NCBI RefSeq assembly: GCF_006345805.1 | Contig: NC_043006.1 | Location: forward strand, 71,734,001-71,798,000 | DNA: 64,000 bases | Reading direction: 5' to 3' | Source: Octopus sinensis | Lineage: Eukaryota | Shown: positions 18,001 through 39,000 of the stretch, one piece after another | How the letters are laid out: every line of letters starts with the position of its first letter | Position numbering within the stretch: position 1 is the stretch's first letter | The notes under the pieces: generated by a model | The model's input: the letters and a program-made list of their open reading frames with translations, nothing else | Databases searched by the model: none | What the model was told of the DNA's origin: nothing | Program-made: the position numbers and the translations under genes

Positions 18001-21000
18001 TTTCAGTTTCCGTCTACCAAATCGCCTTACAAGGCTTTGGTTGACCCGAGGCTATAGTAGAAGACACTTACCCAAGGTGCCATGCAGTGGAACTGAACCC
18101 AGAACCATGTGGTTGGTAAGCAACCTACGTCCCCTACAGCCATTCCTGTATTTACTTATCCATACCTGGTGGTGTTAGATAATATTTCCTCTAATCCTTC
18201 TACATTTCATTTATTTCAGCCCAAAGTGTTATGAAGATGAGCTTACCTATGTGAATTTTCATGGAAAACGAAGGGAATTTAGGACTGCAAATGGTACTTG
18301 TAATAATCTAGGGAACAAGTACTGGGGGGCTGCTTATAATGAATATTCACGTCTCATTCCACCGGCTTATATCGACGGTCAGTGAAGAAAGACACTCAAA
18401 TGTCTCCTTTTTTTTCTTTCCTGAATTCTGACTGAATTCTCTACTCTCTTCTTTGCTCCTCCCCCTCTCTCTCTTTTCCTCCCTCTTTGTTGTTGTGTTG
18501 TTGTTGTTGTTGTTGTTGTTGTTGTTGTGTTGTTGTTGTTGTTGTTGTTGTTGTTGTTGTTGTTGTTTGTTCTTCTTCTTCTTCTTCTTCTTCTTCTTCT
18601 TCTTCTTCTTCTTCTTCTTCTTCTTCTTATTATTATTATTATTATTATTATTATTATTATTGTTGTTGTTGTTATTATTACCTCCTCCTTAGCAAAGGCA
18701 GAGGTATTGTTTTTCAGTCACATTTGTTTGTTTGTTTGTTTGCTTGTCTGTGGAAAAGATATCTCAAGAACTGCTGGATGGATTCAGATGAAACTTTCAG
18801 GGATGTTTGGCCTCATGACTGGCATGAACTGATTAGATTTTGGGATCAATTCGGTACCAGTCAATTCCTTTAATTTTTGAGATCGGTCAGGTTCATTTTT
18901 AGTATTCTCATTTGTGAGAGCAGTTGAGTTTATTTTAGATATTCTCATTTTAAAAATCATCCCTGAGAGGATGTTGGTGTTGCCTTGGCGGAGGTTTGCA
19001 CTCTCTGGGTGCTCTTGTTATTATTATTATTATTATTATTATTATTATTATTATTATTATTATTTTATTTTCATCATCATTGTTATTATTTAGGCAGTAA
19101 GCTAGCAGAATAGTCAGCAGATTGGGCAAAATGTTTAGTAGCTGTAGGTCCATCTTAACGTTTTGTGTTCAAATTCCATACAAGTCAACTTTGCCCTTCA
19201 TCTCTTTGGGGGTTGATAAAATGAATACCAGTTGAGCGCTGGGGTCTCCTGAACTTACTGACCCTATGCCAAAATTTGAAACCATTATTATTGGTATCAG
19301 TATTAATATTAGCTTTATAACTGTTATATGCTATAATGGTTAGCAGGGATGTTGTCTTGTTTTGGCAACAATAAAACTCCTCAAATCTCAAGAATCTTTC
19401 TTAGGATTCTTACAGGATACTGGATTCTACTTTTCTGTAGGTTGACAGGTGATTCTCAATTCCAATATCCTTCAGCCTCTCAGGTAGCAGTTAGGGTGTT
19501 GTGCCAAGTGCACAAATTACCACAGGAATAATTGTTAGCCATGTCATCCAACAATCTCTTCATCCTGATATTTCTAAATTTTTTCAATTCCTTGGGTATC
19601 CTCTTTATTACCAATTGGTATAGCAAAGTCTATGACGTTACATTGTTTATTATTATCATTATTATTATTATTATTATTATTATTATTATTATTATTCGTA
19701 TACACACAACAGATTAGACTATTGGAAACGAAAAATTCCTAACATTGGGCTACAACAAGTAACCTTAGATGCCAAGAACCCTCCTAAGTATCCTAGCTGT
19801 CCCTAAGAACTCTGTTTTCTGGAGCTGAGCTGTACTAAACTGCATTTTATGCCTATTTCCTCTATCTATTTCTTCAAATCTTTAGGAATAATTCCTATGT
19901 ACCTATAACTACTGGAATACATTTTACCCACACTTTCCATAGTCTCTGTTATTAAATGGCTAGGTCCTGGTACTTTTTTTTTATACTTCTCATTTTGGGG
20001 TTGATAAATTAAGTACCAGTTAAGTACTGGGGTCGATGTAATTGACTAGCCACCTTCCCTAAAATTTCAGACCTTACGCCTATATTAGAAAGGATTATCA
20101 TTATTATTATTATTATTATTATTATTATTATTATTATTATTATTATTATTACTTTTATTATTATTTTCATTCTACCTCTTTTCTTTTCAGGTTATGACAA
20201 ACCAAAAATATATGGAAAGAGTGGAGGATTATTACCAAACGCTCGTGTTGTTAGGTGCAATCTATTTAGGAAACCTTTCAATGCGAAATTCCTGTCAAAA
20301 CTGAGTCTTTTTACTGCGTTCTTCTCTCAGGCTATTTCCCATGATTTGTCTGACACAAGTCGACCATCAAGTAAGTCTTTGTTAATAGAGGACTTTGAAA
20401 GAACATAGTGACAGTATGGTTAAGTTTTGAAGGAAAAGTATGTGCTTGAAATGTGAAAATCATTTCTTCTTTACATAGTTATTTTAGCTTTAATTTCTGT
20501 ATTTGGATGGCATAAAAGACACAAAGGGTATATTAAATGCACCGCAATTCTAGCAGCACATATTCAAGATAACATGTTTTTCTTTCACTAAAGCATTTAA
20601 TATAAGCTCAACTTTGTATATAGAACCCCAGGTAATATTTTTGAGATATTCTTTTTTATAAAAAGTTCAACTTATGTGCCATCAAATACAATAATCTATT
20701 ATCATAATGAGTGGTCCAAAATATAGGAGCTAACAAAAGTATTCAATATGCAGGTGTAGTATGTTAGTTAATTTGTCACATGCATTCTATTTCAAAACTT
20801 TTATGATTGTGTCATTGCTACTGTTCACTGAAGTGTTTTATTCTAGGTGTCTGTTAATTACTATTGTTGAAAACAAAAATAATCAATATAAACTAAATAT
20901 GTCAATTATCAATCACATATAATCTTAACAGAAGAGATATAATCACTGTACATGAAATATAATTCCTAATAACCAATTATATATTTGATCCGAGATCAAA

Positions 21001-36000: not shown

Positions 36001-39000
36001 CATGTATAGTAGTGATGGGTTAAAGGTAAGAGTTACCTATGCTTTATTAACTGTCTTTGAGAAAGTTACTCTAGCTGGAAGCAGTAACAATATCAGGATA
36101 AATGGAAAATCAAAGTACTTTTCAAGACCAATGTCAAACACACACATATACACAACACACACTACTGTTTTTGTCATAAAGATTCTCTTTGATAATCATT
36201 CTGTATTTTGTCAACAGCATTTTTCACTTTTTTTCTTTTCTACAGATTACAATGACAAACTAAATCCATCCATTATAAACTCTGTTGCAACTGCAGTATT
36301 CCGTTTTAGCCATTTCATGCTCCGAGCCAATATTTTATCATACTATGATAACAAAGGTGCTCCAGTATGTCACTTGAAAGATAAATTTGTGCTCTTCAAA
36401 AAACATCCATTGATATGCTCTAAAAAGAAGTATTACTTCCCATTTAGCAGCCTTATAAAGAGTACAAAACCACTCTTTAAGACCATTACTCGTGCCCCGA
36501 ACTTCATCAGAGGTCAGTTAAACCAACATGCACAGCAGATTTCAGCTTTCAGAATTGATGAATTGGGTGATATTTTCTCCAAAAACCAATTTGATCTTGG
36601 CAGTGTCTTCATACAAAAGGGAAGAGATCATGGTTTGCCCGGTTACACTCATTACAGGAAGTTGTGTGCATCCTTTTATGATAAATATGCTCCTGTGAAG
36701 AGTTTCTTGGATTTGGTCAACCATCCTTTGTTTGTTAGAAAGAAATTGAAGACACTTTACAAGTAAAGTTATTAATCTTTTATTTTTATTGTTTTATTTT
36801 TCTCCAAACTTCACTAAAAAGATGTAGCTTGAAATACTAATCTACGAATGTAATATGGTGGTATGGACATGTGTTGAGGAGGGATGAGAACCATGTTCTA
36901 AGGAAAGTGCTTGAGTTTACAGTGAATGAACTGTGAAAGCAAGGTCAAGCAAAGAGAACATTGAGGGGAAGGGTAGAGGAGGAGATAGATGGGGTTGGCT
37001 TAAGGGGGGAGGATGCCTAAAACTGGGTGAGATGGTGTGAGAGCAAATACTGTAAGAGCGAGGTAGATCCAGCCACCCCGTTAACGAGGACAAATCCAGA
37101 TTTAAAATATTGGAATTCATTCATTCACGAAGTCCCCTACTAATAGGAAAGGAAAAGAATGGGCTTTTTCCTTCCTTGATGATGATGATGATGGTGATGA
37201 TGATTCAGTATTCCTATGTTTTATACAGTGGAAAAGTTTTTTCCCCATCCTTAACATCAATTTTTTAACATATCCCTCTACCATTTCTGTACCCTTTCCT
37301 TTTCCTATGAAGTATGGGATTTCAAGAGACAGCTATTCTCAAACTTCACCAGAAACAGATTTGTTGTGGCTCACATATGATGCTGGGATCCAGGTTAAAA
37401 ACAAAAAGTTAGAAATTGAAACAGTTATCTACTCCACCCCAACTTAGTCATTTGATTATAAAATATTGGGTTGTCCGGAAAGTTTGTGCCAATTTTTAAA
37501 GGAAAGAAAAAGGTCAATAAATTCTTGCCCTTACATTTTTAATCAACCAAATATGAACCACTTTGTTGCACAATGCATCTCCATCTTTCCTTTAAATTGA
37601 AAATACCTTCTTCCCAGAATTGAGGTGGTTTCATGGCAAAGAATTCATCAAGGTATCTTTTTATGTCATCCAAGGAATTGAAATTTTTACCATTAAGACT
37701 ATTCTGCAGAGACCTGAATAAGTGGAAATCTGAAGGAGCAATATCTGGTGAATATGGAGGGTGGGGTAACACATCCCAGCCGAGCTGCAGCAATTTTTGT
37801 CTGGTTCCCAAAGCATCAAGTGCTGAAAATGAACTTTCTTATCTTCCATTTTAAAGGATTACAGAATTAACACAGGTTATAGGAACATAAATCTTCTTCC
37901 ACGAAAAGATAGCTTAAACTGTGCTCTAAATGGAGGTGTAGTCAAATCCTATTTTATGGATTCAACCACATTCTAAAATAAGTCGAAAAGAAAGCTACTA
38001 TAAATTAGCACAAACTTTCTGGACAACCCAATACTTATTTCAAAGAGGTTTACAAATGAATAACCCTGCAATGGACTGGTGTGCCATTTAGGGGGACTGT
38101 TGTGATCTTGGTCACTTATATTCTATGGAAACTAGGAATCCTAGCACTTGAGACAGTAATGTTTGATGGTTGATGATAATGATGATAAGTTCTGTGGTTA
38201 ATTAAATATTCCTACAAGGCATCCTAAATGTGAAGAGACTTAGAATAGAAGATAAATACAGTGAAAAAAGTTGCTAGAAATCAACTTTATTTACTCCTTA
38301 ACTTGTTTCAGCCAATTGGCTATGGTCAAACTAGTGCTATCTTTTTTTTTTTACTATCTGTCCAATATCTTTTAGTTATTATATCTAATATCCATATAGT
38401 CATCTAATATCTGTAAATAATATCTATACATAATCTAATGTCTATATATTATATACATCTTTTACACACTTCACATATTACTAACCAGTTGTTTCTCCTA
38501 CATATTTACAGATGTGTGGATGATATTGATTTATTAGTTGGTGGAATAACAGAGACACCAACAAATGGTGCTGTCTTTGGACCACTCTTCCAATGTCTAA
38601 TGGGAACTCAGATGTCTAAATTAAAGTTTGGTGATAGGTTTTGGTACCAGAACCACAGATTCACACCAGGTAAAGTAACATTTCTCAAATATATTCTTTT
38701 TCAGTTAAAAATACAGATAATAAAGAAACGGCAACAATCATTATTATAACTGTGAAGAAAGGTAGTGAGCAGCCAGGATCATTAATGCTAAGCATTTTGT
38801 CTGTTTTTACAATCTGAGTTCAAATTCCACTGAGGTCAACTTTTGCCTTTTATTCTTTCAGGGTCAATAAAACAAGTACCAGTTGAACACTGGGGTCGAT
38901 GTAATCATCTATTCTCTCTCCACTAATTTCAAGTCTTATACTTATAATAAAAATATTATTACTCTTAGAGTGACAGAGCAGTAGAATTGTTACTCTACAG

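Follow-up and report, generated by a model that had tools for sequence, protein, structure and literature searches.

We analysed a window of 64,000 nucleotides (nt) from the genome of Octopus sinensis (NCBI RefSeq assembly GCF_006345805.1, contig NC_043006.1, positions 71,734,001 to 71,798,000 of the forward strand; positions below count from the first nucleotide of the window). The window contains a gene for an animal heme peroxidase whose domain is interrupted by a long His- and Tyr-rich insert. A preliminary description of the locus had proposed that the heme pocket of this protein is rewired, with both acids that form heme esters and the proximal Asn lost and the catalytic His and Arg residues kept. 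The profile match, the fold, and the distal triad of the protein place it among the animal heme peroxidases. In particular, it matches Pfam An_peroxidase (PF03098) with 445 bits, against a cut-off of 25, and over the complete profile (positions 1-530 of 530). A tblastn search with four homologues found no further peroxidase copy in the window.

The exon model was built from an Octopus bimaculoides protein (A0A0L8IF09), one paralog, and inspection of splice sites. It comprises 11 exons on the + strand, is partial at the 5′ end, and has AG and GT at every boundary, with all phases matching (Table 1). The preliminary description had counted 14 exons; 11 are definable, the 5′ exon or exons excepted. 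A scan of the window for an ATG, a hydrophobic core, and a phase-2 donor did not find the 5′ exon(s) with start codon and signal peptide, and a candidate at 15626-15705 was rejected as microsatellite- or repeat-derived. The third exon of the model is a giant exon, the acceptor of which is the only in-frame AG after exon E2 (alternative acceptors at 23711 and 23743 both lead into stop codons and were rejected). Splicing of its donor to the exon for the Ca2+-binding loop restores the conserved R-E-Q-x-N. The two terminal Tyr codons agree with the O. bimaculoides C-terminus, ...WKEYY. Exon E2, the giant exon, the Ca2+-loop exon, and the two exons that follow form a run of five consecutive exons (20191-34036, +), each of phase 1-1, so that omission of any single one would preserve the reading frame.

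Direct translation reproduces every pocket motif of the preliminary description, and the intact calcium loop TSFLDGS, and confirms each coordinate that the description had stated. With residues numbered as in myeloperoxidase, QAISHD keeps Gln91, His95, and Asp96 and has Ser for Asp94; GDSRDSSN keeps Arg239 and has Ser for Glu242; FRFSH retains Arg333 and His336; and DLGSVFIQKGRDH has Phe for Asn421 and Lys for Arg424. The distal triad Gln-His-Arg is present, both catalytic histidines are retained, and the distal Ca2+ site is complete (Asp96 plus loop residues Thr, Phe, Asp, and Ser; family motif LTSFxDxS). The canonical ester-forming acids are both Ser, and the proximal triad is His-Phe-Lys in place of His-Asn-Arg. 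The protein shares the distal triad and the Ca2+ site with the catalytically competent families 1-3 and 6 (chordate peroxidases, peroxidasins, peroxinectins, and the DdPoxA type), and departs from the well-studied covalent-heme members (motifs xGQxxDHDx and xRxxEx) in two of their defining traits, the ester acids and the proximal triad. Two alignments uphold the four substitutions and the retained residues alike. Specifically, a phmmer comparison of the spliced, insert-less domain with lactoperoxidase from the PDB (E=8e-67) pairs every motif residue by residue ('sqaishdl' with 'gqivdhdl'; 'gdsrdssn' with 'gdsraseq'; 'frfsh' with 'frfgh'; 'dlgsvfiqkgrdhglpgy' with 'dlaainlqrcrdhgmpgy'), and a MAFFT alignment with 120 homologues puts all pocket residues in the same columns. 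Nine pocket-lining positions are off consensus, and further lineage-specific changes there are Gly90→Ser, Phe92→Ala, Val240→Asp, Asn241→Ser, and Gly335→Ser, the last found in no other lineage among the homologues compared.

With Ser at both ester positions, neither canonical heme ester can form, and the protein would very probably have no heme ester bonds. A different outcome would follow if Asp240, two residues before the lost Glu242, served as a relocated ester acid and kept the heme covalent. Most homologues (96 of 120) have Val or Ala at position 240, and Asp at this position is limited to the octopus lineage, where it stands beside the Glu242→Ser change. We consider such a relocated ester very improbable: the i+1 residue of the helix faces away from the side of Arg239 and Glu242, nothing near Asp94 offers a substitute for that acid, and we know of no precedent for a heme ester formed by a relocated acid.

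Loss of the ester acids is, as judged from the alignments, ordinary variation in the family that has been little studied biochemically. Among the 120 best homologues, 76 have Asp at position 94 and about 32 (about 27%) have a non-acidic residue there, and position 242 is Glu in 72 and replaced in 47 (about 40%). About 17 (about 14%) have lost both acids and have the Gln, His, Arg, His, Asn, and Arg residues intact; they include oyster and mussel sequences and sequences named 'chorion peroxidase' (beetles, rotifers) and 'mlt-7' (Trichinella), names that come from source annotation and not from tested function. Asp94→Ser also occurs in two octopus paralogs (P0003 and P0009). The preliminary description had said that its proposal would fail if many ordinary invertebrate peroxidases shared the same substitutions with normal activity; for the ester acids, the sharing is indeed what we find. 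These counts, and the paralogs, favour the view that the substitutions are normal variation without consequence and that the protein behaves like other 'chorion peroxidases'.

The proximal side of the pocket is a different matter. In 275 motif instances from 265 other homologues, residue 421 is Asn in 227, Asp in 21, Ile in 7, Ala in 6, Ser in 5, and Phe in none, and residue 424 is Arg in 256, Gln in 12, and Lys in 1. The combination of Phe421 and Lys424 occurs in none of the 275 and is confined to two octopus orthologs, the O. sinensis gene and its O. bimaculoides counterpart. This combination, the nine off-consensus pocket positions, and an insert at a site where no other homologue has one render normal variation without consequence an improbable account of the protein as a whole. 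The proposal of a rewired pocket therefore stands for the proximal substitutions, which are unique to the lineage and kept in O. bimaculoides, and falls for the ester acids taken by themselves. The pairing of a His-Phe-Lys proximal side with an intra-domain His/Tyr-rich polyprotein insert is without counterpart in the data searched. Six of the homologues (P0011, P0058, P0145, P0150, P0161, and P0199) form a 'DLxxxIIQQGRDHG' subgroup that has Ile421 and Gln424; the proximal His is gone in both of those checked, and the subgroup probably represents a separate heme-free lineage.

Searches of 5.8 billion proteins and 1.84 billion cluster representatives returned O. bimaculoides A0A0L8IF09 as the sole close relative, with the next best matches at about 34-37% identity. 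Across seven shared exons, the two proteins agree at 407 of 430 residues (94.7%); they differ by 23 substitutions, all of them outside the pocket motifs, and by no indel. The A0A0L8IF09 entry is truncated, being without the N-terminal third that carries the distal His helix and without the insert, and its residues 1-21 derive from a model that begins at a spurious intronic ATG just 5′ of the Ca2+-loop exon. A separate search with the N-terminal exons plus the first part of the insert gave no homologue. The distal-His half is thus absent from every ortholog annotation, and Asp94→Ser can be checked in a second species only through primers published for Octopus maya.

The gene is genuine, fast-evolving, and so far known from octopuses only, and it is almost certainly real and expressed. 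The preliminary description had argued against a pseudogene, and we agree. A recent pseudogene that still looks intact would be compatible with fast evolution, and the small divergence from O. bimaculoides makes an intact frame only moderately informative. Nevertheless, all 11 exons are canonical and free of stops and frameshifts, including 3.5 kb of slippage-prone repeats; there are no indels relative to O. bimaculoides; and in O. maya the ortholog yields a spliced transcript whose level changes with reproductive stage (see below). Decay of the gene is thus extremely improbable.

The giant exon encodes a 1,147-residue insert between two short peroxidase segments. HCPLDKC and YKVPCKKSCINLVRS, the segments at its two ends, align to the CxxxxC and CxxFxRS elements of lactoperoxidase, which are neighbours there, so that the insert is bounded by the peroxidase motifs CxxxxC and CINLVRS. 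The insert consists of modules: a Tyr/Pro/His-rich head with a run of ten His (His10, 23949-23978), His/Leu repeats of 28, 70, and 126 residues, (SHT)n, a Tyr/Lys/Pro-rich block, (HKPKSYPY)7, and about 11 copies of HHYGSSYSSKHHDP. Three R-x-K-R sites of the proprotein-convertase type split it into modules, and the first two sites have in common a repeated 15-residue motif, DDDYLPRYKRSVSKP. The giant exon lies within an open frame of 1,205 codons that spans several unrelated repeat families, the period of every tandem repeat in the insert is a multiple of 3, and the ratio of nonsynonymous to synonymous substitution (dN/dS) between copies of the His/Leu repeat is 0.29-0.37, with differences that are mainly synonymous. 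From the long frame, the periods divisible by 3, the low repeat dN/dS, the peroxidase motifs at the ends, and the restored R-E-Q, we infer that the insert is coding. A strong negative GC skew at 24-28 kb is caused by the insert.

The distance from S-H-D to R-E-Q is at most 86 residues in other homologues versus 1,193 in the octopus gene. The insert matches no Pfam family, and a search with the insert alone against 5.8 billion proteins gave 5,463 short-word candidates, none with E<=1e-3. Myeloperoxidase is divided into light and heavy chains by excision of a hexapeptide from a surface loop just before VNCETSC (PMC5437232), and the insert enters the octopus domain about 13-14 residues downstream of that hexapeptide, in a part of the fold where chain breaks are known to be tolerated. 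The preliminary description had dealt with the insert only as a part to be taken out; it is probably central to the function of the protein.

The His/Tyr-rich frame could instead lie outside the mature protein, being intronic or skipped in the main isoform, and the peroxidase would then be of normal length. The giant exon is symmetrical, its skipping would be frame-neutral, it is predicted from genome sequence, and the O. bimaculoides gene model omits it. However, skipping would also remove the conserved CxxFxRS segment, which is present only in the giant exon, and the frame runs for 1,205 codons across unrelated repeat families, with periods in multiples of 3 and dN/dS below 0.4. We regard exclusion of the insert as distinctly unlikely.

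Evidence for expression comes from a study of the O. maya oviducal gland, which lists quantitative polymerase chain reaction (qPCR) primers for a 'chorion peroxidase', TRINITY_DN16362_c4_g6_i1, with a 116-bp amplicon (PMC8976471). The primers match the spliced E1+E2 model with 2 (forward) and 3 (reverse) mismatches and define an amplicon of exactly 116 bp. The forward primer crosses the E1-E2 junction, straddling 18377/20191, and has no match in the unspliced window at <=3 mismatches. The primers encode PAYHDGY and PFNAKC; the O. sinensis gene has PAYIDGY and PFNAKF, and paralog P0009 has PNSYHDRKG. The primer match, the amplicon size, and the span of the junction together indicate that the O. 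maya ortholog is transcribed and spliced as modelled. Its transcript rises to a peak at the fertilization stage and falls in senescence (PMC8976471), and expression in the female tract at the time of egg-coat formation is established for this ortholog only. With an E-value of 3e-9, the BLASTx match of the O. maya contig is weak, which suggests a fragment that stops near the repeats. DUOX2, neuroendocrine convertase 1 (Pcsk1), and peroxiredoxin-4 (PRDX4) are also among the differentially expressed genes listed in that study, and the fertilization stage is enriched for 'Hydrogen peroxide catabolic process' and 'protein hydroxylation' (PMC8976471). A search of the literature on octopus histidine-rich peroxidases, beak cross-linking peroxidases, and cuttlefish egg-case peroxidases found nothing specific.

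An AlphaFold2 model of the C-terminal 430 residues of the O. bimaculoides ortholog has a predicted template-modelling score (pTM) of 0.83, and its best Foldseek matches are myeloperoxidase heavy chains (template-modelling score, TM, 0.75; E=3e-22). The chordate peroxidases of family 1 of the peroxidase-cyclooxygenase superfamily (lactoperoxidase, myeloperoxidase, and eosinophil peroxidase) are the best PDB matches to the octopus protein in both sequence and fold, and share with it the distal Gln-His-Arg, the proximal His, Arg333, and the Ca2+ loop. In contrast to them, the octopus protein has no Asp94, Glu242, or Met243, carries the Asn421→Phe and Arg424→Lys changes, is missing several conserved disulfides, and contains the insert. 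Reduction potential and the capacity for halide oxidation rise with the number of ester bonds, and Dictyostelium DdPoxA (PDB 6ERC), which has lost one ester acid (Asp→Ile), is active, with a lower reduction potential and poor oxidation of bromide and chloride (PMC5787809). In contrast to the octopus protein, DdPoxA still has the Glu, which forms one ester, and an unaltered His-Asn-Arg triad. Invertebrate peroxidases with double loss resemble it in the replacement of Asp94 and Glu242, in the retained Gln, His, Arg, and His, and in an expected role in matrix or egg-envelope cross-linking, but they keep Asn421 (or Asp) and Arg424 and have no insert.

Cyclooxygenases (prostaglandin H synthases, family 4) bind heme b non-covalently. 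Their pocket is analogous in style to that of the octopus protein, and the relation is remote: prostaglandin synthase matches reach E=1e-8 over 125 residues and a TM score of about 0.6, compared with the lactoperoxidase and myeloperoxidase values given above. Cyclooxygenases are without the Asp of the DHD motif, the Glu of xRxxE, and the proximal Asn (PMC4420034), whereas the octopus protein still has its distal Arg and Ca2+ site. It is cyclooxygenase-like in its likely heme environment and, by sequence and fold, is not a cyclooxygenase relative. Degenerate domains, namely those of dual oxidases, the vertebrate peroxidasin group Pxd2, and the 'DLxxxIIQQGRDHG' subgroup, are similar to it in having a variable or hydrophobic residue 421 and a replaced Arg424. 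The peroxidase domains of dual oxidases are without the proximal His (PMC4420034). The two checked subgroup sequences share that loss, in contrast to the octopus protein, which keeps all catalytic histidines.

Systems that cross-link extracellular coats by pairing a peroxidase with a dual oxidase include sea-urchin ovoperoxidase with Udx1, Caenorhabditis elegans MLT-7 with BLI-3, and insect chorion peroxidase. Like the octopus case, they involve a peroxidase of the female tract or extracellular space that is expressed as an egg coat hardens, and DUOX2 is in the octopus gland list. They differ in that enzyme and substrates come from separate genes, whereas in the octopus the candidate substrates lie inside the enzyme polypeptide. 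Structural proteins rich in His and Tyr or 3,4-dihydroxyphenylalanine (DOPA) include mussel foot protein-1, with its decapeptide AKPSYPPTYK, byssal His-rich domains, and the His-rich proteins of squid beak. The insert is similar to these in composition, with repeats of the Lys-Pro-Ser-Tyr-Pro type (HKPKSYPY, seven copies) and His-rich blocks; the likeness is in composition only, with no detectable homology.

The reading that we prefer, held tentatively at a little below an even chance for the whole chain including processing of the insert, is that the protein is a cross-linking peroxidase with non-covalent heme that performs one-electron chemistry in hardening of the egg envelope. The gene product, an animal-type heme peroxidase, would be produced in the oviducal gland and secreted, at about the time of fertilization and egg-laying. 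Heme b would be bound non-covalently, and the proximal His would be without its usual hydrogen-bond partner. Asn421 hydrogen-bonds the proximal His and tunes iron reactivity, and families 4 and 7 (cyclooxygenases and dual oxidases) are without it (PMC3533774, PMC4420034). With Lys in place of Arg424, anchoring of the heme propionate would be weaker, and the heme environment would be closer to that of cyclooxygenases than to that of lactoperoxidase. The reduction potential would be low, with oxidation of chloride and bromide beyond reach; one-electron oxidation of phenols (tyrosine and DOPA), driven by H2O2 that a dual oxidase would supply, could still be possible. The insert would be translated within the same precursor, in the surface loop beside the point where the myeloperoxidase chain is cut, and proprotein convertases would cut the three RxKR sites, yielding a two-chain enzyme and several polypeptides rich in Tyr, Lys, Pro, and His. 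The released polypeptides may be the enzyme's own cross-linking substrates (through dityrosine, quinone-His, and metal-His links) in hardening of egg envelope, stalk, or cement.

The principal rival to a cross-linking enzyme is a pseudo-peroxidase, in which a domain without productive heme would serve the His/Tyr-rich material as a folded module for transport, assembly, or adhesion and another enzyme of the gland would perform the oxidation. Several observations weigh against the cross-linking reading, and most of them suit this rival. Of 85 columns with >=90% conservation in the family, 12 have a different residue in the octopus domain, the highest value among 116 sequences (median 2.4%), so that retention of about 10 catalytic and Ca2+-site residues is statistically not compelling. 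Among the residues changed at these columns are five or six conserved cysteines. Of the proximal triad only the His remains, and Gly335→Ser is unique to the lineage. The octopus domain has the longest terminal branch in a neighbour-joining tree, and a rough dN/dS near 0.5, calculated from very few sites (40 nt from the primers and about 60 nt from a part of the gene model that derives from an intron), suggests weak constraint. In the ortholog model, the predicted local distance difference test (pLDDT) is 53-74 for the proximal helices versus at least 90 in the core. Elsewhere in the family, a hydrophobic residue at 421 (Ile or Ala) marks a subgroup that has also lost the proximal His, and dual-oxidase peroxidase domains provide a precedent for inactive domains (PMC4420034). 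In addition, heme binding and activity are predicted from sequence and model, and inclusion of the giant exon in mature mRNA is predicted from its open frame and splice sites. Convertase cleavage, the use of the products as cross-linking substrates, and secretion are likewise predictions; the scan of the window found no signal peptide.

Against a pseudo-peroxidase, Gln91, His95, Arg239, Arg333, His336, and all Ca2+ ligands are kept, and the pocket motifs are untouched by the differences from O. bimaculoides. The cysteines are lost mostly as pairs, which suggests ongoing selection on structure, and many homologues lack both ester acids yet are otherwise intact. We judge a pseudo-peroxidase possible and on balance unlikely. 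As to catalysis in itself, the chance that the domain is active is about even or slightly better.

The cross-linking reading can be carried further, to a self-contained hardening kit: a split peroxidase, cargo freed by convertases as its own substrates, and an ester-free His-Phe-Lys heme b site tuned to one-electron tyrosine chemistry. In this complete form the proposal is doubtful. If true, it would represent a new architecture for assembly of extracellular matrix or egg coat, and the protein would be the first animal-type peroxidase outside the cyclooxygenases to be active without the proximal Asn. Work on the superfamily ties halide oxidation and high reduction potential to the heme esters and the His-Asn-Arg triad; a natural, expressed protein that has the catalytic residues and neither of these features would test the need for each. 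The homologue counts also suggest that ester-free peroxidases are numerous among invertebrates and have hardly been studied. The fusion of enzyme and insert, together with expression of the ortholog in the gland that coats octopus eggs, suggests a new mode of delivering a cross-linking enzyme together with its substrates, and the gene offers a molecular handle on hardening of the octopus egg envelope and stalk, of relevance to reproduction, aquaculture, and bio-inspired materials.

Table 1. Positions of the peroxidase gene, its motifs and insert, and other features of the window
Feature	Positions	Strand	Remarks
Exon E1 (partial coding sequence)	18220-18377	+	AG acceptor 18218-19, GT donor 18378-79; start of peroxidase domain, PKCYEDE...FRTANGTCNNL...PPAYIDG
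Exon E2, distal-histidine helix	20191-20370	+	O. maya reverse primer at 20272-20291, 3 mismatches
QAISHD	20328-20345	+	Gln91 20328-30; Asp94→Ser 20337-20339; His95 20340-20342
Giant exon, 3,546 nt, symmetrical phase 1-1	23737-27282	+	HCPLDKC, 1,147-residue insert, YKVPCKKSCINLVRS
HCPLDKC	23748-23768	+	Peroxidase segment before insert
Insert, 1,147 residues	23769-27209	+	His 22%, Ser 14%, Tyr 11%, Leu 11%
Proprotein-convertase-type site 1	25788-25799	+	DDDYLP-RYKR/SVSKP
Proprotein-convertase-type site 2	26157-26168	+	DDDDDDYLP-RYKR/SVSKP
Proprotein-convertase-type site 3	26631-26642	+	G-RHKR/SADK
YKVPCKKSCINLVRS	27210-27254	+	Peroxidase segment after insert
Ca2+-binding loop exon	30400-30489	+	TSFLDGS at 30420-30440
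Exon encoding LLRTSECLGLPFPP...PYPCFKT	30954-31061	+	Equivalent of conserved Cys221→Phe
Distal Arg helix exon, GDSRDSSN	33791-34036	+	Arg239 33799-33801; Asp240 33802-33804; Glu242→Ser 33808-33810
Proximal-side exon	36246-36762	+	
FRFSH	36299-36313	+	Arg333, Gly335→Ser, His336
DLGSVFIQKGRDH	36593-36631	+	Asn421→Phe 36608-36610; Arg424→Lys 36617-36619
Exon encoding CVDDIDLLVGG...GDRFWYQNHRFTP	38512-38669	+	
Exon encoding AQLASISSVKMSRIIYDNTN...	40293-40392	+	Conserved Cys of 'ICDN'→Tyr
Exon encoding CYGYDCGYDRKYFPFKPIDLTPWKQ	40959-41031	+	
Start of terminal exon	41999-42007	+	TAT TAT TAA (Tyr-Tyr-stop); follows strong polypyrimidine/AG acceptor, the sole such downstream site
Tandem duplication, 747 bp	16068-17354		(CA)n and (TA)n microsatellites at flanks
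LINE/retrotransposon-like remnant frame	28007-28438	-	
Mariner/Tc1-like transposase remnant	34876-35127	-	In peroxidase intron
Mariner/Tc1-like transposase remnant	37542-37838	-	In peroxidase intron
LINE/retrotransposon-like remnant frame	43279-43833	-	
LINE/retrotransposon-like remnant frame	44408-44818	-	
Open frame with methyltransferase motif I	63014-63235	+	'KDKVIADIGAGTG'

Repeat-derived sequences lie within and around the peroxidase gene. Two remnants in its introns were named as Mariner/Tc1-like transposases by the motif PPYSPDIAPSDFHLF alone, and three further frames resemble remnants of long interspersed nuclear elements (LINEs) or other retrotransposons, of which the two at 43-45 kb are mutually related. 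None of the eight intronic and flanking transposon-like open frames matches Pfam at E<=0.01. Upstream of exon E1, the copies of the tandem duplication are 100% identical over 300 and 189 nt, and represent either a recent duplication or an assembly artefact. Towards the end of the window, the open frame with methyltransferase motif I has protein arginine N-methyltransferase 1 (PRMT1) as its best PDB match (E=2.7e-5) and is probably an exon of a neighbouring PRMT-like gene.

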